A DNA stretch of 64,000 bases from Phaeosaccion multiseriatum (lineage: Eukaryota; Protista; Ochrophyta, other classes): positions 4,650,001 through 4,714,000 of the forward strand of contig OZ218951.1 of assembly GCA_965112735.1 (NCBI GenBank), written 5' to 3'. Positions 7,880 through 32,767 of this stretch are shown here, piece by piece. Made by a program: the position numbers and the translations under genes. Numbering within the stretch: position 1 is the stretch's first letter; every line of letters starts with the position of its first letter. The notes beneath the pieces are model-generated. The model had not been told where the DNA came from. It ran no database searches and worked only from the letters and a program-made list of their open reading frames with translations.

Positions 7880-8282
7880 CGAGAAAAGAGCCTCTTTATT
7901 TCGGTAACGTTACGCTCCGGGCCGGGCGCCGCCGCCGAGCGGAGGTTCTCCTCCTGACCAGTGTCTCAAGACGAGTGTTCCTCCTTCTTCCCACTTGCAC
8001 CACCTCAACCCCTTGATATGTATTCTCCCTCTTTGTGTGTTTGTCCAAGATGTCCACGGGTTGTGTTGTGCGGGGGGGGGGGAGCGACGCGTCCCCAAAA
8101 AAAAAAAAAGCTTCGCCAAAAAAAATTACGTCAATGAAAAAACGCTGGGCCGGGCCCCCGGCTCCCCTCTTTTTCTCTTTTTCCGTTGCCATCATTGGCT
8201 GCCGGTATCGGCATTATCCAGCCCCCTGGAAAGCTTGAAAGAATGGAGAGGAGACATCTGCGGTAGGAGAGGGGGGCCCACC

Positions 8283-9767
8283 ATGATGAGGAAGAGGAGG
8301 CGGGGAGGCTTCCACCTCCTCACCCGACCCAATGGGGTCTTGCGGAACAAGGCTCTATTTATTAGTGTGGTGATGCTCTGCATGGCGACCACGGTGTACC
8401 TCCCACTCCACCGTCTCAGTAAGAGCAGAATAAGCAGATACAGTGGAAGCAGCAGTGGGGAGGGGAGTGTGGAGTTGCGCGTGCCGGACTCGGAGGAGCA
8501 GCTGCTTGTGCGGCAGGTGCTCAAGGCACCACTCAAGCCTATCCCCCCAACTCTATCTCTCGGCCAACCCAGCAAAGCTGCACGCCTTGATCATACTCAT
8601 GGAGAGGAGGAGGAGCAACCGATGCAGCAGCAGCAAGTAGTACGGACTGAGGAGGAGGAGGAGCCCTGGCGACGTCTGGATCGTCGCCGGGCCCTCCGAG
8701 AGCGAGTGGAGAAGCTGCGGCGTAGGAAAGGGTGGGGGGGCAATAGGGAGGGGTGCAAATTCGAGAAGGCGGATCTGCCCGCTGTGGAGGCGCAGGGTGG
8801 GAAATCAGGCTTCTTCCCGTCCCGATCATCCTACATTGTCGTCAACACGGCGAGGACGGGCAGCTCTTTCCTTCAGGAAGCCATGTACGCAATTCCCTCC
8901 GTGAAAGTGCAGTTTGAGCTGGGGCTTTCCTCCGCCACGTGGGCCCTGCAGTGCCAGCAGTGCAGCAGGGGCACACTCAACTCCAAGCTAGAGCGTAAGG
9001 GTGGCCCCGGCGTGGTCAAGTCACACCCGCCCGAGGTGTGCGGCCTGAGTCTGTTCAACCCTCCCATCAACCCGGTGAAGGACCTTGTCACCGTGGCGGA
9101 GGCCCACGATGCTCGCTTTGTGCTGCTGGTGCGGCGCAACCATGTCAGCACGGTGGTGAGCAAGCATCGCATGTTCTCGGGCAAGGAGGAGAAGCGTGCG
9201 GCCACCATCAAGCTCACGGGGATCAATCTGCACCGCTACCTTCTGGAAGAATATGCGCGCTATTGGGACATTTTATCGATCTTGGGCGGGAGCACCAAGC
9301 TTCGCTACATGGTCGTCTTTTACGAGCAGCTTGTGAGCGATCCCTCCACTCTTTTCCACCTAAAGTCCTTCCTCGGACTCGACCCAACCCCCCCACCACC
9401 AGCAGCAGCAGCAGGAGACACCGTCTTGTCGTCCACGAATGGTACAGCAGCTATAGATAGGAATCAAGGGGCCGCCCAGCAGCAAGCGCAACAAGCGTCG
9501 CCGGAGAAGAAGTCTTCGAGCAAGCCATCGCTGGCCTACCTCGCCCCCCAAGCCTTGGCGGAGGGGAGACAACGCGTGGAGGCGTCAGAGAGCCTGACAC
9601 CATACGATCGGGCCCTGCTACGGGGCATGTTGCATGACCAGGCCTATGACGCTACGATCGACTTCCGCGCCTCGTTTGAAGAAGTGTGTCGGAGCAAGCA
9701 CGCCTCCGGCACGGGATCGGCGCCCCTCATTCACTGGACGAACCTCACCTGCTCAGATGTAGTGTAG
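8283..9767 (+). CDS. Type II membrane (Golgi-like) sulfotransferase, Stf0/sulfotransferase P-loop family, intronless
   Basis: Basic N-tail followed by a TM helix (ALFISVVMLCMATTVYL), 5'-PSB motif ARTGSSFL, 3'-PB motif LVRRNHVSTVVS and VFYEQL. Likely start is ATG 8283 within ORF 7995-9767. Confidence 0.7.
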   Translation: MMRKRRRGGFHLLTRPNGVLRNKALFISVVMLCMATTVYLPLHRLSKSRISRYSGSSSGEGSVELRVPDSEEQLLVRQVLKAPLKPIPPTLSLGQPSKAARLDHTHGEEEEQPMQQQQVVRTEEEEEPWRRLDRRRALRERVEKLRRRKGWGGNREGCKFEKADLPAVEAQGGKSGFFPSRSSYIVVNTARTGSSFLQEAMYAIPSVKVQFELGLSSATWALQCQQCSRGTLNSKLERKGGPGVVKSHPPEVCGLSLFNPPINPVKDLVTVAEAHDARFVLLVRRNHVSTVVSKHRMFSGKEEKRAATIKLTGINLHRYLLEEYARYWDILSILGGSTKLRYMVVFYEQLVSDPSTLFHLKSFLGLDPTPPPPAAAAGDTVLSSTNGTAAIDRNQGAAQQQAQQASPEKKSSSKPSLAYLAPQALAEGRQRVEASESLTPYDRALLRGMLHDQAYDATIDFRASFEEVCRSKHASGTGSAPLIHWTNLTCSDVV

Positions 9768-9779
9768 AATGGTGGGGGT

Positions 9780-10690
9780 GTGCTTCATCTCATTGTTAAT
9801 AGAATTGGTGGACTCTTTCGGCATGATGCTTGTTTGAAGGTGCACAAGCGCTCCTCTCCGCCGGTGCCAGCGTGGACTTGGTTGACTTGTGTGGTGCTCC
9901 GGCATTGATCCAGGCATCATTGAACGGCCATCATGCCGTGGTGCAGCAGCTTCTGTCGGCGGGTGCGAAGGTGGAATGGACCACTTTGAGTGGGTGTACG
10001 CCGCTTCATGAAGCCTCACGTAAAGGGCATGAAAGGGTAGTCCATCAGCTGCTTTCCGTCCGCGCGGAGATCCAGCGCCCAAATAGGGAAGGCTTGACTG
10101 CGTTGGTACTGTCCTCCCAGGAAGGGCATCATGCGGTGGTGCAGCAGCTGCTGTCGGCCGGTGCTGATCCCAACCACGTGGATGCTAGAGACGCTGGACG
10201 TCGCACACCCTTGTTGATGGCCGCACGAAATGAACGCCACAGGGTCCTCACGCAGCTGCTGCTCACCGCGGGGGCAAATGCGAATTTGGCATGCCGCGAC
10301 GAAGTGTTTCCGCTTGGCTTTTCGAGCCATGAAGGTCTTTGGTATTGTGGTGGAGCAGCTCATCACGGCCGGCGCTGACCCCGACAGCCGCGGTGGTGTG
10401 GGAGGGAGAACAGCGTTGATGGCAGCGTCTGCGAAACCATTGTGTGAAAGCTGCTCAGGGCTGGCGCAGGGGCGAGTATATTGAGTGACGACGGGTTGGG
10501 AGCGATACGCGCACTGGCTGTGCATGATCTCGCTCAGCTTGGCCATGGCTGCTGGTGTCGAGGCTGGAGGAGCTCCTCTCAGGAGGTGCTGACGTGGAGA
10601 TGCTGACTACTGAAGGGGGTACACCTTTGTTGCTGGCTTCGCTGAGGGGCCACAGCCAGTCTGCAGAGTGACGGCCCATAGTCGCCCCAT
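9780..10690 (+). pseudogene. Ankyrin-repeat pseudogene (copy 1)
   Basis: Ankyrin motifs (GCTPLHEASRKGHERVVHQLLS, RTPLLMAARN, GRTALMAAS) are split across frames by frameshifts and stops. No intact 5' end is visible. Confidence 0.85.
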
Positions 10691-11215
10691 GGCATCCGCG
10701 TCCCCAGCTTTGGCGTTCTCGCAGACGAAGGAACGCACCCACCACTCAAACTCCAAATAAGAAGGTCCCCTTCGCTTGTGCGCGGGAGGGTCCCCGGACC
10801 AAGAGAAGCAGGACTTGACGTCACGATTAACGCAGGCAGCGTCCGCCAGTCTGCATTCCCCGCCGCCATCGCTACTCAGACGCCTGCTCATGTCGCTGCT
10901 GCTGCTCCATCTCCGGGTGCGAGTGCTGGCGCTGCCACAACTGCTGCTGTCTCTCCTGTCACCAGATGGTGAGGCATAAAGGGCCATAGCCGTGAGCCAG
11001 CCAACGGCAACTTGCGGCAAGTGTGCAAGCAGCCAACAGTCGACCAGTCCCCAGCGCGGGCACGCCGCTCACCCGTTGCTGACCCTCCAAGACCTATGCC
11101 ATCAAAGGGGGGGATAATAGGAATCACCTGAAAAAAGTAGCCAGAGTCGATATTAAGGAAGGTAGAAGCAGGAAGCAGACCGGCTGGCGCCGGCCAGAAG
11201 CAGGAAGCAAGGGCG

Positions 11216-11406
11216 GGAGGGAGGGAGGGAGGGAGGGAGGGAGGGAGGGAGGGAGGGAGGGAGGGAGGGAGGGAGGGAGGGAGGGAGGGAGGGAGGGAGG
11301 GAGGGAGGGAGGGAGGGAGGGAGGGAGGGAGGGAGGGAGGGAGGGAGGGAGGGAGGGAGGGAGGGAGGGAGGAAGGGAGGGAGGGAGGGAGGGAGGGAGG
11401 GAGGGA
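11216..11406. repeat. (GGGA)n tetranucleotide tract, about 47 units
   Basis: Directly visible. Confidence 0.95.
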
Positions 11407-11427
11407 GTCGACCCTGGACAAGATCAT

Positions 11428-11570
11428 CTGATTCTGATTACGGCCGGCGCAGCCGGCCTGATTACTGATTATGACCGGCGCCAGCCGGTCTGGTTGCTTA
11501 CAGCCGGTGACCAGCCGGCCTGATTACTGATATTGCGCCGGCCGGGGGCTGATTTTGCGCCGGCCGAAGG
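11428..11570. repeat. Short degenerate tandem repeats CTGATT...GCCGGC(G)...GCCGG with internal hairpins
   Basis: About 5-6 units of roughly 25-35 bp. Confidence 0.7.
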
Positions 11571-12733
11571 AGAGACGGCGACAGCCAGTCCGGCCTGCCC
11601 GCAGGCAGACGAGAGTAGAAGAAGACTTGATATAGATTGATTATGATTTGATAACCCTACTGAGAATGGATAGAAGAGACTACTGAGGTTGACACGTACG
11701 GGCTAATGGCCACGTAGAGACTATACGTTAAGGGGGATAGTGAGATAGATGCGTGGGCACGCTCTATCCCCCCTTATATCCAGGTGGACATAAGTCAGGG
11801 ATTTCCGTAACTGTGAGTGATCCGAAGGCAGAACACATTCACTGTGTTACCTCAATGCCCATCACCTCCGCTCCATCATCTAGGAGGGCATCATTGGAGA
11901 GCTTACATTCCTGTTCGTCATCAGAGCAGCCCTTTACACACCTCCAGCCTAGGCGACGCATCGCCGGTGCAAAGAGTTGACGCCAGTTGGGATTGCCCTG
12001 TTGGCAGATCAGAATGCTGAAGGCGGCCTCATCTTCGAAGGAGTGACGGGGCTGCTGTAGTTGCGCGACTGCTCCATCCGAGGCATCATCGAAGAGGTCA
12101 TCGTCAGCGGTGCCGCTTGGCGTGGTAAGAAGAAAAGTATTTTCGGCTGTCTCGCGCGCCGCAATGTATCATCGCGTTCTCGATTTAGTAAAGGAAGGAG
12201 GGGGGCGGTTCTGGGTGGGCTCCAGGACCGGAGGCATGCCGGGCTGGTAGAGAGACGTCCAGGGGACCAAGATGACGGGGTTGAGTGTGAATGGGGGGGT
12301 CAGAGAGCAGAAGGGAAAGGCAAAGCGGGAAGTTGAGGAGGGCACCGCGGGTCGAAGTCAAGAAGGTGATTTGGGCGCTGTGCTGTGGGCTGTTTGGACC
12401 TAATTTGGGCTAATGTTAGCAGAATAGAGGCCTACACACACTCATACTACAAGAGGGACACTCATTGGGGGGTGTACAGGGCCGTCTACGGTTTATTTTT
12501 GCCCCGACGGTTTTTTCCGCCCGCCCGCGGCAGATTTTTCCAAATGTGCTACGCATTCCGAAATATTTTATCGGTGCGGCCTCGATCGAGGGTCAGGATG
12601 ACGACGAAAAGGGGCCCTTCACACTTGTAAATTCTCTCCCTCACTCTGTAGCTCCTGAAAGGACACTTCGAGCTGCCCAGCACTCAGCCGACTATATATC
12701 CCTCAAGTCTTTTGAAGGGTTTCATATCTCGTT

Positions 12734-13246
12734 CGGCCCCGTGCACGCCTAGCGGCCTAGGCCTATTTTGGAAAATTGCCCGGCCTAGCGAGGGCCGTAG
12801 GCCCTCGGCCTATTTATAGGCCGCCTAGGCGGCGGCCTAGGCGGGGGCCTGAGGCCCGCGGCCTAGGGCAGACGCCAACTAGGCGCAGGTCCAGGGCGGG
12901 AATATGCTCATATGCCCCTGGGCTGGCCGTGAACCCGCCCAAGTGTCGTCAGTTTTAAGCAAATGTATTGCATGGGACAAGTGAGGAGTAGACTTGGTTC
13001 GTATTGTCTCTTTCCGCCTCGCTGGCCCTACGAGGAGTGCAGGCCTAGAGGTGTGCTGCTACCCACTGGCTGGGCGGCACCACGCACGCGCCCACGGTCA
13101 CTGGGAGGCTGCCTAGAGGCGGGCTATAGGCCGCCTAGGGCTGAAAAGTGAGCGGCCTAGAGCGGCCGGAGGCCGCCGGCCTAGGCCTATTTCGGCCGAA
13201 GGCCGAGCGGCCTAGCGGTCTAGGCCGCTAGGCGTGCACGGGGCGG
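12734..13246. mobile_element. MITE / non-autonomous TIR element, copy 1 (hAT-like)
   Basis: Terminal inverted repeats CGGCCCCGTGCACGCCTAGCGGCCTAG ... CTAGGCCGCTAGGCGTGCACGGGGCGG, many subterminal GGCCTAG / GCCGCCTAG repeats, and no transposase. Confidence 0.88.
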
Positions 13247-13313
13247 AGTGTGTGGGCGTGTGTCTCTGGGTGGCAAGTTGGTGATACAAAAAGGTCGGAA
13301 AAGGAAAAAAGAA

Positions 13314-13689
13314 AAAAAGTAGTTCAATAGTTTTCGAGCAGAGCGAGTTTACGAGTCGATAGTATCGAAAACCTATTTTCGGGAAACGGGGAGGACTGGC
13401 AGTTACAGTGTTACAGTCAAGAAATGGTTGAAGGCAAGGGTACGCCGCGCCGACTGACGCAAGGGGCCTAGCGGCCCGCTCGACACGTAGGACGCCCACC
13501 CCACCGGGGTATAGCAAGAATCTAGCATTCACTACTGTAAAAGAGGAGGCGACGCAAGTACGGCGTCGCAAGAGTTGTAGCAAGTGCCGAAGAGCTCAGC
13601 GCGGTGAGAAGGACAGCGAAGGGGCGGAGCAGCCCAGCAGTCCACCGCGCAAAGGAGACGGCAGCGACAGCAAAAGTTTCCGGGGGACG
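13314..13689 (+). repeat. Split direct repeat A1
   Basis: Near-identical to 17662-18039 (TAGTTTTCGAGCAGAGCGAG...CAGCAAAAGTTTCC). Confidence 0.92.
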
Positions 13690-14679
13690 CCGCTCTACGA
13701 GAACGGGATCCGGGACTTTCTACGAGGCGTTTCTTTTCAGATCAGCCGTGTTTTGTGGTCTGAAGAGGAGGCACCGCAAGTTCAGCGTTGCAAGAGTCGT
13801 CACAAGTATTTAAGTGCTCAGCACGGTAAGGGCAGCATGGGGCAGCCCAGCAGCCACGGGGCGGACGGGGCTGGCAGCGATCGTTTAAGTTCCAGGGGGG
13901 ACGCTGCCGCGTTCCGACGCGGGGAGAAAAATTTAACAGAAGGCAGCTCGCCGGCGACCCGTCGTAGTATCGCAGAGGTAGCGAACGGGGTCAGCCCCAC
14001 GGGCGCTGGATGATCCGCATCGGGGCATGGTTGACCATCAGCGGGAGTTTAGTGCCGCGAGTGGGCCCCAGGGCGGGGGATGAGAGAAGATCAGTTCCAA
14101 GTTCCGCTGAGGCAGAAAGGGCAGAACGGGACGGAGGCGGTGGGTAGGGCAGCTACACCCCAGGCTCAGTCGGGCCCTGCGGTCAGCTGCGGGCCCTCTG
14201 TCACGAGCATGCGGGCGGTGGTTCGAGTGTCGAAGGCCATTGCCACTCTAGGTGGGGTTTCACCGCCCACACACGGACCAAGACGACGACGGGGGATAGA
14301 GAGTACATCAGCAACACGCAGTACAGGAGTATGCAGCGGCTGGAAGCAGGGTAGCAGCTCGAAGTGCAGCAGCAGAAGGGAGCGCAGCAGCGGGCTGCGA
14401 AGCGACGAGCAGCAGCAGGGTAGCAGCTCAGCAGCACCAGAACACCAGAAGGGAGCGCAGCAGCGGGCTGCGAAAGCAGATGGAAGTGGCACAGCTCGAA
14501 GGGCAGCAGCAGAAGGCAATGCAACAGGCAGAGCAGCCGCTTGAAGTATAGCACCCGAAGATAGTGGAACAGCGGGTTGCGAAGGTACAGCAGTATGCAG
14601 TTCAGCAGCTGGAAGCATGGCAGCAGCCGTGAGCATGGCAGCAGCTCGAAGTGCACGGGCGGAAGCACGGCAGCGGTTT

Positions 14680-15835
14680 TACGACAGATGATGGAAGTGG
14701 CGCAGCAGCTCCAAGTACAGCGGCAGAAGGCAGCGCCGCAGCAGCGGGCTGCGATGCGACGTGCAGTACGACAGATGATGGAAGGGGCGCAGCAGCATCC
14801 AAGTACAGCAGCAGAAGGCAGCGCCGCAGCAGCGGGCTGCGATGCGACGTGAGTACGACGATGATGGGAGTGGCGTAGCAGCTCCAAGTACAGCAGCAGA
14901 AGGCAGCGCCGCAGCAGCGGACTGCGATGCGACGTGCAGGACGACGATGATGGGAGTGGCGTAGCAGCTCCAAGTACAGCAGCAGAAGGCAGCAGCGGGC
15001 TGCGATGGGACGTGCAGGACGACGATGATGGGAGTGGCGTAGCAGATCCAAGTACAGCAGCAGAAGGCAGCGCCGCAGCAGCGGGCTGCGATGCGACGTG
15101 TAGTACGACAGATGACGGAGGTGGCGCAGCAGCTCCAAGTACAGCAGCAGAGGCAGCAGCGGGCTGCGATGCGACGTGCAGGACGACGATGATGGGAGTG
15201 GCGTAGCAGATCCAAGTACAGCAGCAGAAGGCAGCGCCGCAGCAGCGGGCTGCGATGCGACGTGCAGTACGACAGATGACGGAGGTGGCGCAGCAGCTCC
15301 AAGTACAGCAGCAGAGGCAGCAGCGGGCTGCGATGCGACGTGCAGGACGACGATGATGGGAGTGGCGTAGCAGATCCAAGTACAGCAGCAGAAGGCAGCG
15401 CCGCAGCAGCGGGCTGCGATGCGACGTGCAGGACGACGATGATGGGAGTGGCGTAGCAGATCCAAGTACAGCAGCAGAAGGCAGCGCCGCAGCAGCGGGC
15501 TGCGATGCGACGTGCAGTACGACAGATGATGGAAGGGGCGCAGCAGCTCCAAGTACAGCAGCAGAAGGCAGCGCCGCAACAGCGGGCTGCGATGCGACGC
15601 GCAGTACTACAGATGATGGAGGTGGCGTAGCAGCTCCAAGTACAGCAGCAGAAGGCAGCGCCGCAGCAGCGGGCTGCGATGCGACGTACAGTACGACAGA
15701 TGATGGATGGAAGTGGCGCAGCAGCTCCAAGCACAGCAGCAGAAGGTAGCGCCGCAGCAGCGGGCTGCGATGCGACGTGCAGTACGACAGATGATGGAAG
15801 TGGCGCAGCAGCTCCAAGTGCAGCAGCACAAGGCA
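14680..15835. repeat. Tandem array of about 14 units of 77-91 bp inside the YR element, flanked by degenerate GCA-rich sequence (~14300-17220)
   Basis: Recurring CCAAGTACAGCAGCAGAAGGCAGCGCCGCAGCAGCGGGCTGCGATGCGACGTGCA with two alternating variable segments. Confidence 0.92.
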
Positions 15836-17230
15836 ATGGAACAGCTGGAAGCAGGGCAGTCATCCGAAGGCAGTGGAACAGCGGGCTGCGAAGGTACAGC
15901 AGCAGCCTGAAGCATGGCAGCAGCAAAAGGCAGTCTAGCAGTGGGCTGCGATGCAGCGTGCAGTGCAGCAGCTGGAAGTGTCGCAGCAGCTCGAAGTTCC
16001 GCAGCGGAAGGCAGTGCAGCAGCTGGAAGCAGGGCAGCCGCCTAAAGGATAGCATCCGAGACAGTGGAATAGCGGGCTGCGAAGGTACACAGTATGAAGT
16101 ACAGCAGCAGTGCAGCAGCGGGCGGCGAGGCAACACGCACTAAAGCAGCTGGAAGTAGGGCAGCAGCGCGAGGTAGCAGAGGCCGGAGGCAGCGCATCAG
16201 CACTAAGTAGAGCAGAACGTAGGCAGCGGCGGCTGCGAAACGACACGTAGTACAGCAGTAGACAGCAGCGCAGCATCGATCTGCAAGGCAACGTGAGGTG
16301 CAGCAGTATGCAATGAAGCGGCTGGACACAGCAGTCCCCAGCATGGCAGCCGAAGGCAGTGCAGCCGCTGGAAGCGGGGCAGCAGCTCGTAGAGTTACTG
16401 CAGAAGGCAGTCAGCAGCGGGCCGGCGAAGCGACACGTAGATCAGCATCGGGCAGAGCCGAAGATGGAGTGCAGGGCAGAGCAGAAGCTAGAGGCAGCGT
16501 AGCGGCAGGCAGCGCAGCAGCAGGCAGCGAATCAATAGGCAGCGCAGCAGCGCGCAGTACCGGGGAAGGCAGCGCAACAGCAGACCGTGCAGCATCAGGC
16601 GCTAAGCAGCCCGCAGAAAGACGGAACCAGCGCGACAGTAGGCAGTGAGGCAACGTGCAGCATAGCAGCAGCTGAAGGCAGTGAGCAGCCGGAGGCAGTG
16701 CAGCGGTATGGCGGCGCCGCAACAGGTGGCGAAGCGACAGATAGCGCGACAGTTTGCAGCCTAGTAGCGGCAGGCAGCGCAACGTCAGGCAGAGCAGCAA
16801 GTGGCAGCGCAGCAGGAGCCGGCGCGGCAGCAGACACTGAAGCAGCACACCGCGCAGCCGCAGGCAGCGCAGGAGGAGGCAGCGGAGCAGCAGGCAGCGC
16901 CGCAGAAGGCAGAGCTGCAGCAGGCAGCGAAGCAGCATGGCAGTACAGCAACCGCCAGTGAAACAGCAGGCAGCGCAGCAGCGGGCGGCGTAGCAGTAGG
17001 CGGTTAGCCGTAGAAGGCCGCGCAACACCAGGCAGGGCAGGAGTAGGCAGCACAGCCGCAGGAGGAGCGCAGTAGGCTGGCAGTGCGACAGCGGCAGGAC
17101 CCCCGCAGAGGACAGCGTAGCAACGGCCGGCAATGCGACAGTAGGCAGCGTAGCATCACCGCAGCTGAGCAGTAGACAGTGTAGCAGCGGACAATGTAGC
17201 GTCGGGCAACAAGGCAGCAGGTTAGCACGG

Positions 17231-17460
17231 CACCTCTTCAGATCGGCGCGGCAAGGACCATCGCGGCGAGGGACTTCTCGGACGCCCAGGTACAGCGATA
17301 GGGACCATGGAAGAGCAACTGCTTCATCGTCTACACCCGCCAGAACTCGACGGAGTCAACTGAGGTAACGAATACGCTGGCCATAAGCGAGAGAATCGGT
17401 GCTGTAGAAGTTGGGGCCAGAGGGGAGACTAGGGGAGAAGGGGGGAAGGAGACATGAGAT
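17231..17460 (+). pseudogene. Tyrosine recombinase C-terminal fragment (DIRS/Ngaro type)
   Basis: The frame starting at 17233 reads PLQIGAARTIAARDFSDAQVQR*GPWKSNCFIVYTR, a decayed HSLRIGAAT..A..G.SD..IQ..GRWKS..F..YIR box II. The catalytic Tyr codon is at 17332-17334 and there is an in-frame TAG at 17299-17301. Confidence 0.82.
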
Positions 17461-17476
17461 TTCAAGCGGGTGTAGT

Positions 17477-18254
17477 TGGGAGTAGGGGCGAGGCAGACGC
17501 GTCTGCCCGCCCTGCTTTGGCACCCCCTGGAAATCGCATTTACCCCCCCTTACACAATATAAACAATTATAAGTATTAGCAGTTAGCCTGACTGAGCGAG
17601 AGAGCGCTCGAGGGGAAGGCATGGGCAGTACTAGGTGTCAGGACGTAGTGGACTGAAAAAGTAGTTTTCGAGCAGAGCGAGTTTACGAGTCGATAGTATC
17701 GAAAACCTATTTTCAGCAAACGGGGAGGACTGGCAGTTACAGTGTTACAGTCAAGAAATGGTTGAAGGCAAGGGTACGCCGCGCCGACTGACGCAAGGGG
17801 CCTAGCGGCCCGCTCGACACGTAGGACGCCCACCCCACCGGGGTATAGCAAGAATCTAGCATTCACTACTGTAAAAGAGGAGGCGACGCGAGTACGGCGT
17901 CGCAAGAGTTGTAGCAAGTGCCGAAGAGCTCAGCGCGGTGAGAAGGACAGCGAAGGGGCGGAGCAGCCCAGCAGTCCACCGCGCAAAGGAGACGGCAGCG
18001 ACAGCAAAAGTTTCCCCACCCGCCCGGCCCGGGGGGACGAGTGGGATTATCGGGAATCCAACGGGGTGGATGGGAGTAGGGGCGAGGCAGACGCGTCTGC
18101 CCGCCCTGCTTTGGCACCCCCTGGAAATCGCATTTACCCCCCCTTACACAATATAAACAATTATAAGTATTAGCATTTACCCGAGGGAGGGAGAGAGCGC
18201 TCGAGGGGAAGGCATGGGCAGTACTAGGTGTCACGACCTAGTGGACTGAAAAAG
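17477..18254 (+). repeat. Split direct repeats B1 (17477-17661), A2 (17662-18039) and B2 (18071-18254)
   Basis: B1 and B2 share TGGGAGTAGGGGCGAGGCAGACGCGTCTGCC...GTGGACTGAAAAAG; A2 matches A1. Confidence 0.92.
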
Positions 18255-18294
18255 CCTCAAGCTCTTCGCGCCCTGGAGGAAGATCCCCCTCCGA

Positions 18295-20331
18295 ATGCCA
18301 TCCTTTGAAGAGACGGCTGGGCTTGTGGACGAGTGGTATGAGGGCACGAAGGAGTGGGAGGCTTCGGGCGGGGCCAGCAGCACGGAGCACGTCCTTCTAC
18401 TACTCAAGGTGGTTTTATCCGCTGTGGACCTGAAGCGCTTTAAAAAGAAAGGCTACACTCCGCTCCATGCCCTGGCCGATATGGACAAGAGCAAGAAGAC
18501 ACGCTGCGCAGAGGAGAAGGGCATGAATATGCGGGGGAGCGTTAAGCTGCTGCAGAGTTGCGGGCTTGATATTGACACCAGGAGTGGGAACAACGCACCT
18601 TTTCCTGACCGGACGCCTCTTCACCGAGCTGCAAGGGAGGGACACTTCGACTTGGTCAAGGGACTCGTGGGAGCCGGTGCAAATGTCAGTGCGACGTGTG
18701 AGAATAGGTGGACCGCATTGAGCTTTGCTGCTGCAGGTGACCACCCCCTGATTTTGAGGTACTTGATGAGGCATGGCGCGGAAGTGGAGGGCAGCGGGGC
18801 CCTACACCAGGCAGCGTATGTCGGCAGTCCTGAGTGTGTGGAACCGTTGCTCAAGGCTGGAGCAAGGTCGAATGAGGGAGCCAGAGACGATTACACGGCA
18901 GCCCAGAAGTGCTGCATGGGTGGTGGTGAGAAGAAGGGAGGACGGGCGGAGGCCTTGTCTCTGCTGCTGGAGGGCGGTGCCAACGTGCAAGTTAAGAATG
19001 CCACTGATGCTAACCTTCTGCACCTCGCCGCAGGGAACGGCAATGTGGAGTGCATTCCTGGTCTGCTGGAGAGAGGGCTGCAGCTTGATGCCAGAGATGA
19101 CAGCATGTGCACACCGCTTCATTTTGCATGCTACGGCGGAAGATTGGCTTGTGTGAAGGAGCTCATGTTCTGTGGCACCGCTCTCGACTTGGTGGATGAT
19201 GAGGGCTGTACCCCCCTCTTCGATGCGGTCGTGGGGGGGCATGTGACGAGCGTGTCTGCGCTGATACAAGCCGGTGCCTCAGTCAAGGTGAAGAGCACGA
19301 CTGCCATAACACCTCTACACCTGGCCGCAGCTCTGGGCAACATGGAGCTGTCTTATCTGCTTGTCGAGGCTGAGGCTGAGATCGATGCTCTGACCAACAC
19401 GGGCCAAAGTCCCTTGATGGCCTGCATGCATCCTGATGAACAAGCCTTGTCACAGAAACTTGGATATTACGATGTTGGGCCAGGCAGCCAGGGGGCGCGC
19501 GAGGAGGTGGCTGAATTCCTGCTGAAGAGGGGCGCTGCCGTTGACGAGAAGGTTATCGCTTTGGCAGGAGAGAAGGGCTTCGGTGGCGTGCTTGCCTCGT
19601 TTATCAACACAAAGAGCAACAAGGTGGATGCTCTCACTGACAGATTCGACACTGTAGCGGAGCACTATTCCATCCAGAGCGGCACGCGTAGCCAAGAGGT
19701 GGTGCATGTGCGACTGATGGAGGACGTGAGTGAGGCGAAGGGAGAGAAGCTGTACGCTTTGAGCATCCCGCTGGTGGAGCAGCTGATGGAAAAGGTCAGA
19801 GAGGGAGGGGAGAAAGGAGGAGAGGATGGGACGAAGAACGCTGGCAAGGCCTCTTCTGCTGCGGGTATTCTCCCCACCTTCCTGGACCCTCCCAACTATG
19901 AGTACAGGAGCGGCAAGAAAGGAAAGGGGAAGGACAAGAAGAAAGAGGTTACGCTCAAGTACGACGGAGTGAACTTTACGGAGGAGGGCTTCGAGGCCGT
20001 GGTGAAGTTCGTCACGACGGGCAGCGTGGAGAAGCTGCTGACGAGGAGGCCTGGATCAGCAGGGAACGAGAGCAGCAGCGGTGCGGAGGGGGGCAGCAGC
20101 AGCAGCGGTACAGTGAGGAAAGAGTGTGTAAAGCTGTTTGACGAGATCAGAGCGCAGCAGGCCCTGCAGGCCGCGGAATTCTTCTGCTTGGAGGGCATGT
20201 CGAGGGAGGTGAAGACGTTGATGAGCGAGTACGGCTTTGCGCTGCAGGAGGAGAAGGGTGGGGGGGGAGGAGGAGGACGAGAGGGAGCTGATGGCGAAGG
20301 AGAGCCTTCGCGGAAGAGGGTTCGAGCCTGA
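18295..20331 (+). CDS. Ankyrin-repeat protein (about 10 repeats) with C-terminal BTB/POZ-like domain, intronless, 678 aa
   Basis: Repeats such as RTPLHRAAREGH, WTALSFAAAGDH, CTPLHFACYGG and ITPLHLAAALGN. C-terminal FTEEGFEAVVKFVTTG...ALQAAEFFCLEGM resembles BTB helices. Ends in basic SRKRVRA. Confidence 0.85.
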   Translation: MPSFEETAGLVDEWYEGTKEWEASGGASSTEHVLLLLKVVLSAVDLKRFKKKGYTPLHALADMDKSKKTRCAEEKGMNMRGSVKLLQSCGLDIDTRSGNNAPFPDRTPLHRAAREGHFDLVKGLVGAGANVSATCENRWTALSFAAAGDHPLILRYLMRHGAEVEGSGALHQAAYVGSPECVEPLLKAGARSNEGARDDYTAAQKCCMGGGEKKGGRAEALSLLLEGGANVQVKNATDANLLHLAAGNGNVECIPGLLERGLQLDARDDSMCTPLHFACYGGRLACVKELMFCGTALDLVDDEGCTPLFDAVVGGHVTSVSALIQAGASVKVKSTTAITPLHLAAALGNMELSYLLVEAEAEIDALTNTGQSPLMACMHPDEQALSQKLGYYDVGPGSQGAREEVAEFLLKRGAAVDEKVIALAGEKGFGGVLASFINTKSNKVDALTDRFDTVAEHYSIQSGTRSQEVVHVRLMEDVSEAKGEKLYALSIPLVEQLMEKVREGGEKGGEDGTKNAGKASSAAGILPTFLDPPNYEYRSGKKGKGKDKKKEVTLKYDGVNFTEEGFEAVVKFVTTGSVEKLLTRRPGSAGNESSSGAEGGSSSSGTVRKECVKLFDEIRAQQALQAAEFFCLEGMSREVKTLMSEYGFALQEEKGGGGGGGREGADGEGEPSRKRVRA

Positions 20332-20858
20332 GGTATGCGAGGTAGTCAAACCCTGACGTTCTACCGAACTGTTCTTCGGCAACATGCCCAGAAGGAGGCA
20401 ACAGGTAGAGAGAGTATTGTAGGTAGAGGAAGAAAAAAAAAAAGAGGAGGACGTAGGGTTTCCCCTTTTTACTACGTAGTACTACATAAAAAGGGAAGAA
20501 AGCATACACGAGTCTGTAAGGAGTAGACCGATACAGCTCCTATATCGTAGCTTTATCACGCTCCCGTATGGTACAAAGGAAAGGAAACTATGCTCGCTTG
20601 AAGTGGTACGCAGTGACGCGCACCTTCATCTTAACACTCGATTTGCGTAAGAATCGCCCAAATCGCCCCGGGCGATAATTTTTTTGGACGAGCTCAGGAA
20701 AATGACGCTGGAACAGGCGCTATAGCTCTTCGTGTAGGGGTCGCTTGGGGACACGCTTGGACCCCTCGTGGTGAACCTTCAAGCCGTCCCTTTCTTCTTT
20801 TCTTTTCTGTCTCCAGTCACCTAAGAAGGAAAGGAGGGGCGGGTGCGTATGTATGTGT

Positions 20859-21353
20859 CGGCCCCGTGCACGCCTAGCGGCCTAGGCCTATTTTGGAAAA
20901 TTGCCCGGCCTAGCGAGGGCCGTAGGCCCTCGGCCTATTTGTAGGCCGCCTAGACGGCGGCCTAGGCGGGGGCCGGAGGCCCGCGGCCTAGGGGAGACGC
21001 CAACTATATGCCCCTGGGCTGGCCCGGAACCCGCCCAAGTGTCGTCAGTTTTAAGCAAATGTTAAGGAAAAGGGAGGAGTAGACTTGACTTGGTTCGTGT
21101 TATCTCTTTCCGCCTCGCTGGCCCTACGAGGAGTGCAGGCCTACAGGTGTGCTGCTACCCACTGGCTGGGCGGCACCACGCACGCGCCCACGGTCACTGG
21201 GAGGCTGCCTGCCTAGAGGCGGGCTATAGACCGCCTAGGGCTGAAAAGTGAGCGGCCTAGAGCGGCCGGAGGCCGCCGGCCTAGGCCTATTTCGGCCGAA
21301 GGCCGAGCGGCCTAGCGGCCTAGAGCCTAGGCCGCTAGGCGTGCACGGGGCCG
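20859..21353. mobile_element. MITE / non-autonomous TIR element, copy 2 (same orientation as copy 1)
   Basis: TIRs CGGCCCCGTGCACGCCTAGCGGCCTAGG ... CCTAGGCCGCTAGGCGTGCACGGGGCCG. The body aligns with 12734-13246 apart from a ~29-bp indel and small changes. Confidence 0.9.
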
Positions 21354-22179
21354 ATCTCGTGGTCTGCTGGTCGCACACGCTCCTCCCTCTCCTCACCATT
21401 TTTGAGGTGAAAACTGCTGCCATAAGTGTTTCCATCTCGCCTCACCCCTTCTGCTCCACAGCACCTGCAATCGCACTCTTAGCTGCTCAACGCCGACTTC
21501 CATATGTGGGTCGTAGTCTGCTCAAAGCTATTCCTCCCTCATGGGCTCTTGCTCGCACACGCTCTTCCCCCACTCCCCCCTTGTTTGAGGCCCAAATTCC
21601 CGCCAAAGCAACGGACATTTCAGCTCCACATGTTAGCCCACCATCTCCTAAGACCGCGCTCCCAGCTTCACATCGGCTATTTGACTACATAATCCGTATT
21701 CAGCCCGAAGATTATCACCTCTTGTGTGAGCTACGCCTCTTTCTTTCTCCCTTGTTCAGGGGCAAAGATCTCGTCAACATAGCAGCACATTTCACCTCCT
21801 AAATCGCTCCATACAGACGCAACAATCAGACTTTAAGCTGCTCAACATCTAGAATACTGTCTTTGCCTAAGATCTCCCGAAGCGCTTCGCCTGTGGTTCT
21901 CTGTAGCGTGCGTAATACCTCTTTTCCTGAGCCCACTCGAATTCTACTGATCTTCTACTGACATCCAGGGCTGTTAATTGACATACAAGGGAACATGTCA
22001 TTTGTTGACTTATGTCATTTCTTTCTTTCTCCCCCTCTCTCTCTCCCCTCTCCTTTCCCCTCATTCCCTACACCTCCCTCGTCTCGCCCCACCGCCCCGT
22101 CTTCGCTAAGCTCGATTATCGCCATGTAGAGAGCCGTCAGTGTCGAGGTAGGCTCGGGTCTCCCAAGATTATGTTTCTT

Positions 22180-23668
22180 TGTTCTCATCGTTTCCCTCTC
22201 CCATTGCTTACCCGGCTTGATGAAGCCATCACCAGTGGCCAGAGCGTCACAAAGGTGCAAGCGGCTGTGAGGGCGCTCATCGCTAAAAATCAAGGGAGGA
22301 AGACATGTTTGGACGAACCCGTCAGTGAGGCTGAACACTCTGCCTTGCACTCAGCTGTAGCCGCAGTGACGGGAGCTTTAGCTATTTTGCTGCAAGAGGG
22401 GGCGTCGCCGAATGTTGTCGAGCATACGATGGGCTTCACTGTGTTGAGTGCTGCATATGCGACTAAGGATGCTGCTATTGTGCAAAACCTTCTCTCTGCT
22501 GGCGCTGATGTCGATGGGAAATTCCAAGATGGGATCACGGCCCTCATAGTGGCCGTGATGGTGGTGCAGACGCTGTTGTCCGCCGGTGCAAGGGTGAAAT
22601 TGGCGGACGGTGGTGGCTTCACAGCGTTGATCTTGTCTTCCCGGGAAGGGCATCATGCAGTAATGCAGCAGCTTGTGGATTGGGCAAATAAGGAGGGGCA
22701 TACAGCGCTCCATCAAGCCTCACTTGGAGGGCATAGCAGGGGAGTCCAGCTGCGGCTCTCAGCCGGCGCGGAGGTCGGTAAGACCTGTTAGGTAGGCGGC
22801 ACGGCCTTGTTTTTGGCCTCCCAGCAAGGGTATCATGTGATGGTGCAGCAGCTACTGTCGGCCGGTGCTAATCCCGAACACATGGAGGTGAAGCCCGCAC
22901 CCCTTTGGTAATGGCCGCACAAGGCGCACACCACAGAGTCACGCAGCTTCTGCTCACAGCGGGGGTAAAAGCGAATTCTGCACGCCGCGATGGAGTGTCT
23001 GTGCTTTGTTTAGGTGCGCCAACGGCCAGCAGCAGCTCTTCACAGCCGGCGCTGACCTCGACACCCGTTGTGGTTCGGGAGGGAGAACAGCGTTGATGAT
23101 GGTATGTGCGGGAGGGCACAGAAGTATTGTGCGAAAGCTGCTCAGGGCTGGTGCAGAGGTGAATGCGATCAGTGACGACGGGTTTGGAGCGATACACTTG
23201 GCATCTCACTTTGGCCATGCTCGCGTCGTGGAGGAGCTCATCTGAGGAGGTGCCGATGTGGAGATGCTCGATGTTGAAGGGAACACACCTTTGATGCATG
23301 TTGCTGTGAAGGGCCATGAGGCAGTGATCCGTGTGCTGCTGTCTGCGGGGGCTGATCCTGATAATGAGGGCAATATCTACTGCGGAATGCCCTTGTTTAT
23401 TGCAGCCATGGAGGGCCAGAGCGGGGCGGCACTGGAGCTGCTCTCAGGAGGGGCCTCAGTGTCAAAGACCCTGGTTTTTGCCCGAAGGCTCAGCGATGCA
23501 GTTGTTGAATTCCTGCTGGGCGCGGACACACAGCACTTCGCGTCACAAAGCGCGTAGGACCTGATGCGGGGAACTGATCTTCTCTTTGGCAAGGAACGGA
23601 GGCTGAAAGTGTCGCAGGGAGAGGTGAGCCCTGAGGTGCTGCAGGACGTGGCGGAGGAGATGGCATGA
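22180..23668 (+). pseudogene. Ankyrin-repeat pseudogene (copy 2, paralog of 9780-10690)
   Basis: Ankyrin motifs are spread over ORFs 22012-22791, 22905-23096, 23006-23245 and 23258-23557, with stops at 22789 and 23243 plus frameshifts. Nucleotide similarity to 10130-10660 is visible. Confidence 0.85.
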
Positions 23669-31226: not shown

Positions 31227-31651
31227 CTATTGCGGGACCAGTCCAAGAAGACAAAGAAAAATCCCGCTCAAATTCTGCTCTGCGCCGCATAGCTCCGACC
31301 TCCTCCGCTTCCGCCACATCTCTTTCCTTCTGGGTCCTTTTTGGTTAAAGGTGTTCTATTTTGCCTCATGTCCTGCACTCGCCATAACACCAATCTCGCT
31401 AGTATTTTAACCTTGCAGCAACTTGGGAGATTTGAGATTTCGATATCAAATTTCTGTAACGTTCAAAAAACGAAACTCAAACCCACCGGGGTTCCTCTCC
31501 GTCGCCGCTTGCCCACCAAGGGCACTTGCCAAACGATCACCTTGCTTTCAATCGGCTCGTAGCGCGCACAGGAACACGCACGGAGGAGTCTCCAGCAGGA
31601 GAAGGAGGAGTAGGAGAAGCAGAATTCGTAGGAGCGGAGGTGTGGCACACC

Positions 31652-32767
31652 ATGGATGAGCAGAGGGCGCTGCTGGATCAGCTCATGGGCAGAGAGCGCA
31701 ACGTGCCTGAGGACGAGCGAACGAACAGGAAGCGCCGGTTCGACGATGAGGACGTGTGCAAGTTCTTCTTGATAGGGCTCTGTCCGTATCAGCTCTTTAG
31801 CAACACCAAGAGCGACTTGGGGCCGCACCCCAACGGGGAGGAAGATGATGAGGATATGAAAGCCCAGTTCGATGCCTTGGACCCTGCGGAGAGGGAGAGG
31901 TACGTGGCCAAGTACGAGAGGGAGCTGTATCGGAAGGTGGAGGAGCTGGTGAGTCAGTGTGATCGCAAGGTGGAGAGGAACCAGCAGCGAGTCGACTTGG
32001 AGAATGGGGGCTCGACCAATGCCGCTGCCAAGGCTGCGGAGGAGGCCAAAATCAACCGCCTGGTGGAGATTGACAAGCAGATCAACAACAAGACGGAGGA
32101 GAGCGAGAAGCTGGCCGAGGAGGGGGATGTGGACGAGGCACAGGACTTGCTCAATCAGGTGGAGAGGCTGCGGAGGGAGAAGGAGACGGTAGAGCGGGCC
32201 CACATGGCCCGCTCGCACAAGCGAAACATTGTTTGTGACGTCAGTGGAAACATTATGAGTTCGACGGATAATGAGGAGAGAATCCGATGCCATTTTGAGG
32301 GAAAGCAATACCTGGGCTGGAAGGCGTGCAGGGACTTTCTCGTTTCGTACAAGGAGAAGCTGGCCAAGCAGCGAGACTCTTCCTCCTCCTTGTACAGCAG
32401 AGGAGATGAGAGAGACAGCAGAGGAGGAAGAGATGAGGGTAGAGGTGGCTCCCGCGGGCGGGACGACAGGGACAGAGGGCGGGGCAGGGACAGCAGGAGA
32501 GATAGCCGAGACCGAGACTCGTATTATCGCCGAGGGAGGGACGACTACGGAGGGGGAGGATACCGGGGTGGGAGGGGTGGGCGGGACGAGGATGTGGGAC
32601 ACTATGGGCGGCCCTCGAGCTCGAGGGACGACAGAGGAGGAGGGAGGAGCGGCAGAAGGAGTAGGAGCCGGAGCCGGAGTAGGGGCAGGCGAGATTACGG
32701 CAGCTACGGCGGTGGGGGCGGGGGTGGCGACCGGCACGGGTCGTACAGGAGCAGGGATCGCTACTGA
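31652..32767 (+). CDS. LUC7: LUC7-like U1 snRNP-associated splicing factor, intronless
   Basis: MDEQRALLDQLMG, VCKFFLIGLCPYQLFSNTKSDLG, VCDVSG...HFEGKQYLGW, and an RS/RG-rich tail. Confidence 0.93.
   Translation: MDEQRALLDQLMGRERNVPEDERTNRKRRFDDEDVCKFFLIGLCPYQLFSNTKSDLGPHPNGEEDDEDMKAQFDALDPAERERYVAKYERELYRKVEELVSQCDRKVERNQQRVDLENGGSTNAAAKAAEEAKINRLVEIDKQINNKTEESEKLAEEGDVDEAQDLLNQVERLRREKETVERAHMARSHKRNIVCDVSGNIMSSTDNEERIRCHFEGKQYLGWKACRDFLVSYKEKLAKQRDSSSSLYSRGDERDSRGGRDEGRGGSRGRDDRDRGRGRDSRRDSRDRDSYYRRGRDDYGGGGYRGGRGGRDEDVGHYGRPSSSRDDRGGGRSGRRSRSRSRSRGRRDYGSYGGGGGGGDRHGSYRSRDRY

Follow-up and report, generated by a model that had tools for sequence, protein, structure and literature searches.

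A probable composite transposon bounded by two miniature inverted-repeat elements and containing an ankyrin gene in the stramenopile Phaeosaccion multiseriatum

In a stretch of 64,000 nt of Phaeosaccion multiseriatum DNA (the window; all coordinates are positions within it, and the scope is one locus in one assembly), two directly oriented copies of a MITE (miniature inverted-repeat transposable element) bracket an ankyrin gene and share a single target-site duplication. Related arrangements have been described in several groups of organisms. The Drosophila foldback composites TE1 and TE146 also have whole host genes between two elements with terminal inverted repeats (TIRs), but they are much larger, are bounded by foldback elements and arose in laboratory stocks.

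In maize, the outer ends of directly repeated Ac/Ds pairs move the DNA lying between them, and the pair ends up flanked by a single target-site duplication (Huang and Dooner 2008; Wang et al. 2022, both as cited in PMC9910405). The two nearby direct elements and the single outer duplication are common to these macrotransposons and to the unit reported here. However, the maize elements belong to hAT, generate 8-bp duplications and were found in genetic stocks with active Ac, whereas the unit here is a natural algal insert with MITEs of ~500 bp, TCG ends and a 6-bp duplication. The TIME-COMPs of bacteria likewise consist of two complete, non-autonomous miniature elements that bracket whole genes and use a transposase supplied in trans (PMC13367494). 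Unlike the algal unit, they are Tn3-derived and mostly located on plasmids. No sequence relation between the two was found, the scans of bacterial and viral sequences having returned only chance matches.

The capture model for Pack-CACTA elements begins with two neighbouring direct copies, and such insertions yield cargo-carrying hybrids in Arabidopsis (PMC6379663). Giant non-autonomous DNA transposons that carry cargo are known in Ectocarpus (PMC12477816), and these, together with the Pack-TYPE elements (Pack-CACTA and Pack-MULE; PMC6379663), resemble the unit here in being non-autonomous TIR units with host sequence and nested insertions. Pack elements have one left and one right end and contain mostly gene fragments (PMC6379663), whereas all four ends and a whole open reading frame (ORF) survive here. 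By this comparison, the composite unit would correspond to the stage that precedes loss of the inner ends in Pack elements.

Boundaries of the unit and its target site

The composite unit extends from 12733 to 21354 (8,622 bp), including both MITE copies and the 7.6 kb between them. Both copies are in the same orientation, and a third copy is absent from the window. The features that define the unit and its target are as follows.

12580-12732, forward strand: left part of the target, comprising one ~180-bp unit from a degenerate tandem array and running up to the insertion site (profile match)
12727-12732, forward strand: left copy of the target-site duplication, TCTCGT (scan and flank comparison)
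12733-13247, forward strand: MITE copy 1 (515 bp), with an intact outer left TIR (12733-12762) and an inner right TIR at 13218-13247
20858-21354, forward strand: MITE copy 2 (497 bp), with an intact inner left TIR and an outer right TIR at 21325-21354
21355-21360, forward strand: right copy of the target-site duplication, TCTCGT (scan and flank comparison)
21361-21897, forward strand: right part of the target, three array units (21361-21542, 21543-21720 and 21721-21897)

An initial annotation of this DNA had placed the unit at 12726-21361. The pair of elements bracketing the cargo is real, but the ends required correction. When the four MITE termini were lined up, each was found to have one further common base (T at the left, A at the right) beyond the ends used previously. 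The base just outside differs at all four ends, and the terminus was therefore set there, giving both copies the ends TCGG...CCGA. Because this extra terminal base is common to all four ends, the previous reading of a hAT-like 8-bp duplication, matching at 7 of 8 positions, was rejected. With the ends following all four termini, the duplication is the perfect 6-mer TCTCGT, and a 6/6 match has a chance of 7e-4 among random pairs of flanks from the same window.

The two outer TIRs (left end of copy 1, right end of copy 2) are fully complementary, at 30/30 positions. In a blind scan of the whole window for inverted repeats with a flanking duplication, the composite unit was the sole match that was not a microsatellite. 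Taken singly, neither MITE copy is flanked by a target-site duplication in any of the registers 4 to 10, and this bears out the original proposal of a single duplication around the pair. The locus has the defining features of a composite transposon or macrotransposon, namely two element copies around unrelated DNA, a single outer duplication, intact complementary outer ends and a continuous empty site.

The two copies had been described as near-identical TIR elements of ~500 bp in the same orientation. The orientation and the TIRs are as stated, but the identity is 97.1 % (14 substitutions in 479 aligned bases), with six gaps in addition, the largest of 29 bp. Both copies are GC-rich and have the properties of MITEs (length 497-515 bp, 30-bp TIRs, a stable fold and no ORF of 100 aa inside). 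Copy 1 contains many CCTAG/CTAGG subterminal motifs, and its inner right TIR has substitutions at 13245 (the third base from the end) and 13219 (position 29). Copy 2 folds as a long hairpin (z -7.95).

About four strongly diverged units of ~180 bp, in an old tandem array, make up the target. A profile built from the right-flank units alone found 12580-12730 as the only other significant match in the 64 kb (E 3e-7), and when the right flank was masked and four unit phases were used, the match always ended at 12731-12735. Relative to the right-flank units, the last 180 bp of the left flank had a summed global score of 134.5, whereas dinucleotide shuffles averaged 42 (z 4.9). This score was reached by none of 3000 shuffles and none of 6310 window tiles, and the register peak is at 12732. 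A first flank test, which used local alignment, was marginal (3/1000 shuffles and eight window tiles as high), and the register-anchored and profile tests are relied on here. When the outer flanks are joined via one TCTCGT, the neighbouring unit boundary is aligned and the junction is free of gaps. The outer join scores 109 and the joins that remove one MITE copy only score 28 and 50, although the reference array and the right half of this join have sequence in common, and the weight rests on the left-flank tests. The 3' end of the cargo falls outside the array (score -34.5).

With the outer flanks forming one tandem array whose register is kept across the duplication, the entire 8.6 kb is one insert in older DNA, and the outer MITE ends are its limits. 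The predicted empty site is present within the window itself, where joining the outer flanks restores the degenerate tandem array in register. The ends, the duplication and the interrupted target are all read directly from the DNA, as is the cargo anatomy described below. No convincing protein was found in the target array by six-frame translation, and no tRNA or Rfam family was matched at the locus or the target.

Two broken ankyrin genes of another family, at 9839-10652 and 22200-23600, flank the insert. They are on the same strand, are 68 % identical to one another and were ~4 kb apart before the insertion, the block having landed in a decaying ankyrin island. Also on the left side, the segment 12477-12560, which begins CAGGGCCGTC, resembles a hAT-type MITE end; an inverted partner is absent from the window.

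The ankyrin cargo and the nested element

Between the two MITE copies, the order is copy 1, 72 bp, a nested element of 4,935 bp, 40 bp, the ORF, 526 bp and copy 2. Without the nested element the length of the composite block is 3.7 kb, and with it 8.6 kb. The features are listed below.

13302-13319, forward strand: A-rich 18-mer upstream of the gene, at which the nested element also landed (16/18 relative to 20427-20444)
13320-18254, no strand assigned: nested non-autonomous element, 4,935 bp, with split direct repeats (A1, 13328-13681; B1, 17469-17661; A2, 17662-18015; B2, 18063-18254)
14680-16023: internal 87-bp tandem array of the nested element
18295-20331, forward strand: intact intronless ORF, 678 aa, with ankyrin repeats at about residues 100-380 and a C-terminal BTB-like region (the latter only a lead)
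20427-20444, forward strand: A-rich 18-mer, 95 bp after the stop codon (16/18 relative to 13302-13319)

The cargo had been annotated as an intact ankyrin-BTB gene. The ORF is intact and the ankyrin repeats are confirmed (Pfam Ank_2, E 1e-43), but no match to a BTB domain was found for the C-terminal region in Pfam or PDB searches. In the ESM Atlas features for this region, BTB clusters are at the top with a value of 0.89, which is below the 0.9 mark of the tool, and all of the top named matches are BTB. The single-sequence structure model of the C-terminal part (predicted local distance difference test score, pLDDT, of 37) was unusable. A putative C-terminal BTB domain is consequently treated as only a lead. 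The C-terminal region has no homologue at E 0.001 in public sets, and exact look-ups of the cargo protein and the window proteins in public sets returned no match. A search with the whole cargo protein found only generic long ankyrin proteins (~27-40 % identity) and no close relative.

Downstream of the gene, just past the A run, 20455-20490 includes a short palindrome and an inverted repeat, CCCTTTTT...AAAAAGGG around TACTACGTAGTA. A second palindrome is found at ~20662-20676, and a pyrimidine tract that resembles a splice acceptor and ends in CAG is located at 20789-20817.

The repeats of the nested element share a GAAAAAG junction, with A1 and A2 differing at 3/354 positions and B1 and B2 at 11/193. 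Their order (A1 ... B1, A2, B2) is that of the Ngaro/PAT-like tyrosine-recombinase retrotransposons (PMC6681497), which are abundant in brown algae (PMC12477816). However, unlike those elements, the nested element has no detected coding capacity and its interior is a tandem array; no reverse transcriptase, recombinase or gag/RNase H was matched by Pfam in its ORFs. It is Ngaro/PAT-like by repeat order and at most a non-autonomous derivative. The 87-bp array grades into shorter repeats of 15-18 bp, and the segment 13541-13693 has a 72 % echo at 13763-13907. The B2 repeat, which has an AT-rich, TATA-like stretch ~130 bp ahead of the ankyrin start codon, could provide a promoter.

Routes by which the block may have moved

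The block was probably moved by a transposase supplied in trans and acting on the two outer ends, such macrotransposition being the least complicated route. The initial annotation had suggested that the whole unit moved as one piece with the gene. The block is indeed a single insert bounded by the outer MITE ends, and the chances that the ankyrin gene was aboard when the composite moved are, in our estimate, about even. On this reading, the donor locus would have had an intronless ankyrin gene between two direct copies of the ~500-bp non-autonomous TIR element, the pair having arisen from two separate insertions or from a unit with one MITE and the gene that was duplicated in tandem. The transposase would then have brought together copy 1's left end and copy 2's right end and excised the whole block. 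Insertion into the old ~180-bp tandem array at a 6-base staggered cut would have duplicated TCTCGT. The split-direct-repeat retroelement would have landed 40 bp before the start codon either before or after the move. What we infer in this sequence of steps is that a transposase acted, that there was a donor locus, in which order the events took place and that the gene was present during the move.

In favour of macrotransposition, the outer TIRs and the duplication are flawless while the two copies differ by 3 % and six gaps. The mutation at the third base of the inner end of copy 1 would favour use of the outer pair. Other observations weigh on the opposite side. Since the inner left TIR of copy 2 is intact, use of the outer pair was not obligatory. 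A transposase was identified neither within the unit nor by a Pfam scan of 30 unspliced ORFs. No donor site, excision footprint or second copy was found in public protein sets or in metagenome, bacterial and viral contigs, and TIR scans of metagenome and viral contigs gave chance matches of 20-22 bp only, with no further similarity. Recombination into a resident MITE gives an identical final structure, and the A-rich repeat (16/18) that brackets the ORF may be the trace of a gene insertion at a later time. Both of these alternatives are considered here with two others, and the inner flanks of the MITE copies, which bear on recombination, are the following.

13248-13254, forward strand: inner flank of copy 1, GTGTGTG, where a TG tract begins (flank comparison)
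20851-20857, forward strand: inner flank of copy 2, GTATGTG, where a TG-rich tract ends (flank comparison)

If a single MITE had been present first at TCTCGT, a circle with a MITE and the gene, or a donor stretch with two MITEs, could have joined it by homologous recombination or gap repair, leaving two hybrid copies. Such a history, which we consider unlikely, predicts the identical outer duplication and the interrupted target. The inner flanks match at 6/7 positions in a 7-bp register (GTGTGTG and GTATGTG), as if they had once been one insertion site, and a match this strong has a chance of 0.008 for random flanks. However, in the 6-bp register of the family itself they match at 0/6 positions, and both inner flanks are TG tracts, between which such a match is expected 25 % of the time (chance 0.25). 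The value of 6/8 given for the inner flanks in the initial annotation had included TIR bases and is replaced by these counts. The same match would be expected had a MITE-plus-gene unit been duplicated in tandem and then transposed, and it is explained equally well by that duplication or by a shared preference for TG tracts. Recombination would also need one more rare event than transposition. A head-to-tail MITE dimer that was later split by the cargo was considered separately and rejected, as the inner junctions are without a duplicated piece of TCTCGT or of the MITE ends.

The gene may instead have arrived late. A composite of ~1.5 kb (MITE, a core of ~485 bp, MITE) would have formed or transposed first. 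The ankyrin gene, as a retrocopy or otherwise, would afterwards have entered the core at an A-rich site, and the nested retroelement would have followed. The MITE pair would then have moved DNA without shuttling the gene, an outcome to which we give a low probability. Only two sites in the window differ from the upstream A-rich 18-mer at no more than 2 positions, and they lie on either side of the ORF, 40 bp ahead of the start (with the nested element removed) and 95 bp past the stop; the gene is also intronless. However, a 16/18 match is reached by 3 % of random pairs of regions, and this one is of low complexity and was picked after the fact. There is no separate poly(A) tail ahead of the downstream A-rich copy. 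Because other genes in the window, such as LUC7, are also without introns, intron loss is no sign of retroposition here. Even less credible, and in our view highly improbable, is an LTR-type retroelement with the 500-bp direct repeats as its long terminal repeats (LTRs). Direct terminal repeats, a single outer 6-bp duplication and a purine tract 16 bp before copy 2 fit this structure, but the ends are TCG...CGA rather than TG...CA, no primer-binding site lies beside copy 1 and the purine tract does not abut the repeat. Furthermore, the 30-bp TIRs and arrays of subterminal motifs are typical of DNA transposons, the repeats differ by six gaps and no retroelement protein was found with Pfam. A resident gene with an unrelated MITE insertion on either side is incompatible with the interrupted array. 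A chance match between the flanks of two independent insertions around such a gene, or an assembly artefact, is accordingly given hardly any weight, though a 6-mer is short and a target preference could raise the chance of a match. Neither copy has its own duplication, the outer flanks are halves of one tandem array with the cargo ends outside it, and the copies are distinct in sequence, unlike the product of a collapsed or duplicated assembly.

Classification of the MITE family, neighbouring genes and significance

Comparison by ends and duplication length places the MITE family in none of the superfamilies checked. Classical hAT membership was rejected, as this requires an 8-bp duplication and 6 bp were found. 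IS3EU, hAT6 and Dada all have 6-bp duplications, as here (PMC12730594, PMC3706591). IS3EU also has TIRs of at least 30 bp, but its termini are TAYGG...CCRTA and not TCGG...CCGA, and membership was rejected despite the fit of the duplication and TIR lengths. Dada elements are without TIRs and target small RNA genes, whereas the MITEs here have 30-bp TIRs and no tRNA or Rfam match at the target, and Dada membership was also rejected. The duplication lengths of Zisupton, Kyakuja and Plavaka are other than 6 bp.

Elsewhere in the window, LUC7 (31526-32767) and a sulfotransferase-like gene (7995-9767) are single long ORFs without introns, which is unusual for brown-algal relatives. The nearest match of the LUC7 protein is from Phaeothamnion (66 %), followed by Tribonema, Chrysoparadoxa and Ectocarpus, which places the host among the ochrophytes, close to brown and yellow-green algae. 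Genes with GFA, alcohol dehydrogenase, PX, CH-like and UDP-glycosyltransferase domains appear in pieces. In the region 11140-11570, units rich in hairpins and with repeated GATTACT motifs flank a 200-bp (AGGG)n tract. The sequence on one side begins TCGACCC and ends CCGA, and no matching TIR pair or duplication was found for this region, which looks like a decayed composite with a microsatellite core.

The locus is a natural MITE-bounded composite transposon in a stramenopile, probably formed by a known mechanism. Macrotransposition is established in maize, has been proposed as the origin of Pack elements and is common in bacteria, but the composite mechanism has seldom been documented outside plants, flies and bacteria, and no report of such a composite in a stramenopile was found in the searchable literature. 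Natural eukaryotic cases in which four ends are kept, the ORF is whole and the empty site can be proven are rarely documented. The locus is a clean snapshot of the intermediate predicted by gene-capture models, and it points to a group of DNA transposons with ends and a duplication length outside the superfamilies checked. Because the empty site can be proven within the window, the observation is stronger than was first claimed.

MITE pairs of this unclassified lineage (TCG...CGA ends, 6-bp duplications) might routinely disperse fast-evolving intronless ankyrin-BTB genes, with tandem duplication of a MITE-bearing gene unit yielding a ready-made composite that seeds a new locus. This is a speculative extension from one locus, and we regard it as very doubtful. 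Taken as a single case, the unit illustrates a known mechanism well. Should the pattern recur around the ankyrin gene family, it would provide a testable route for the spread of rapidly evolving gene families.

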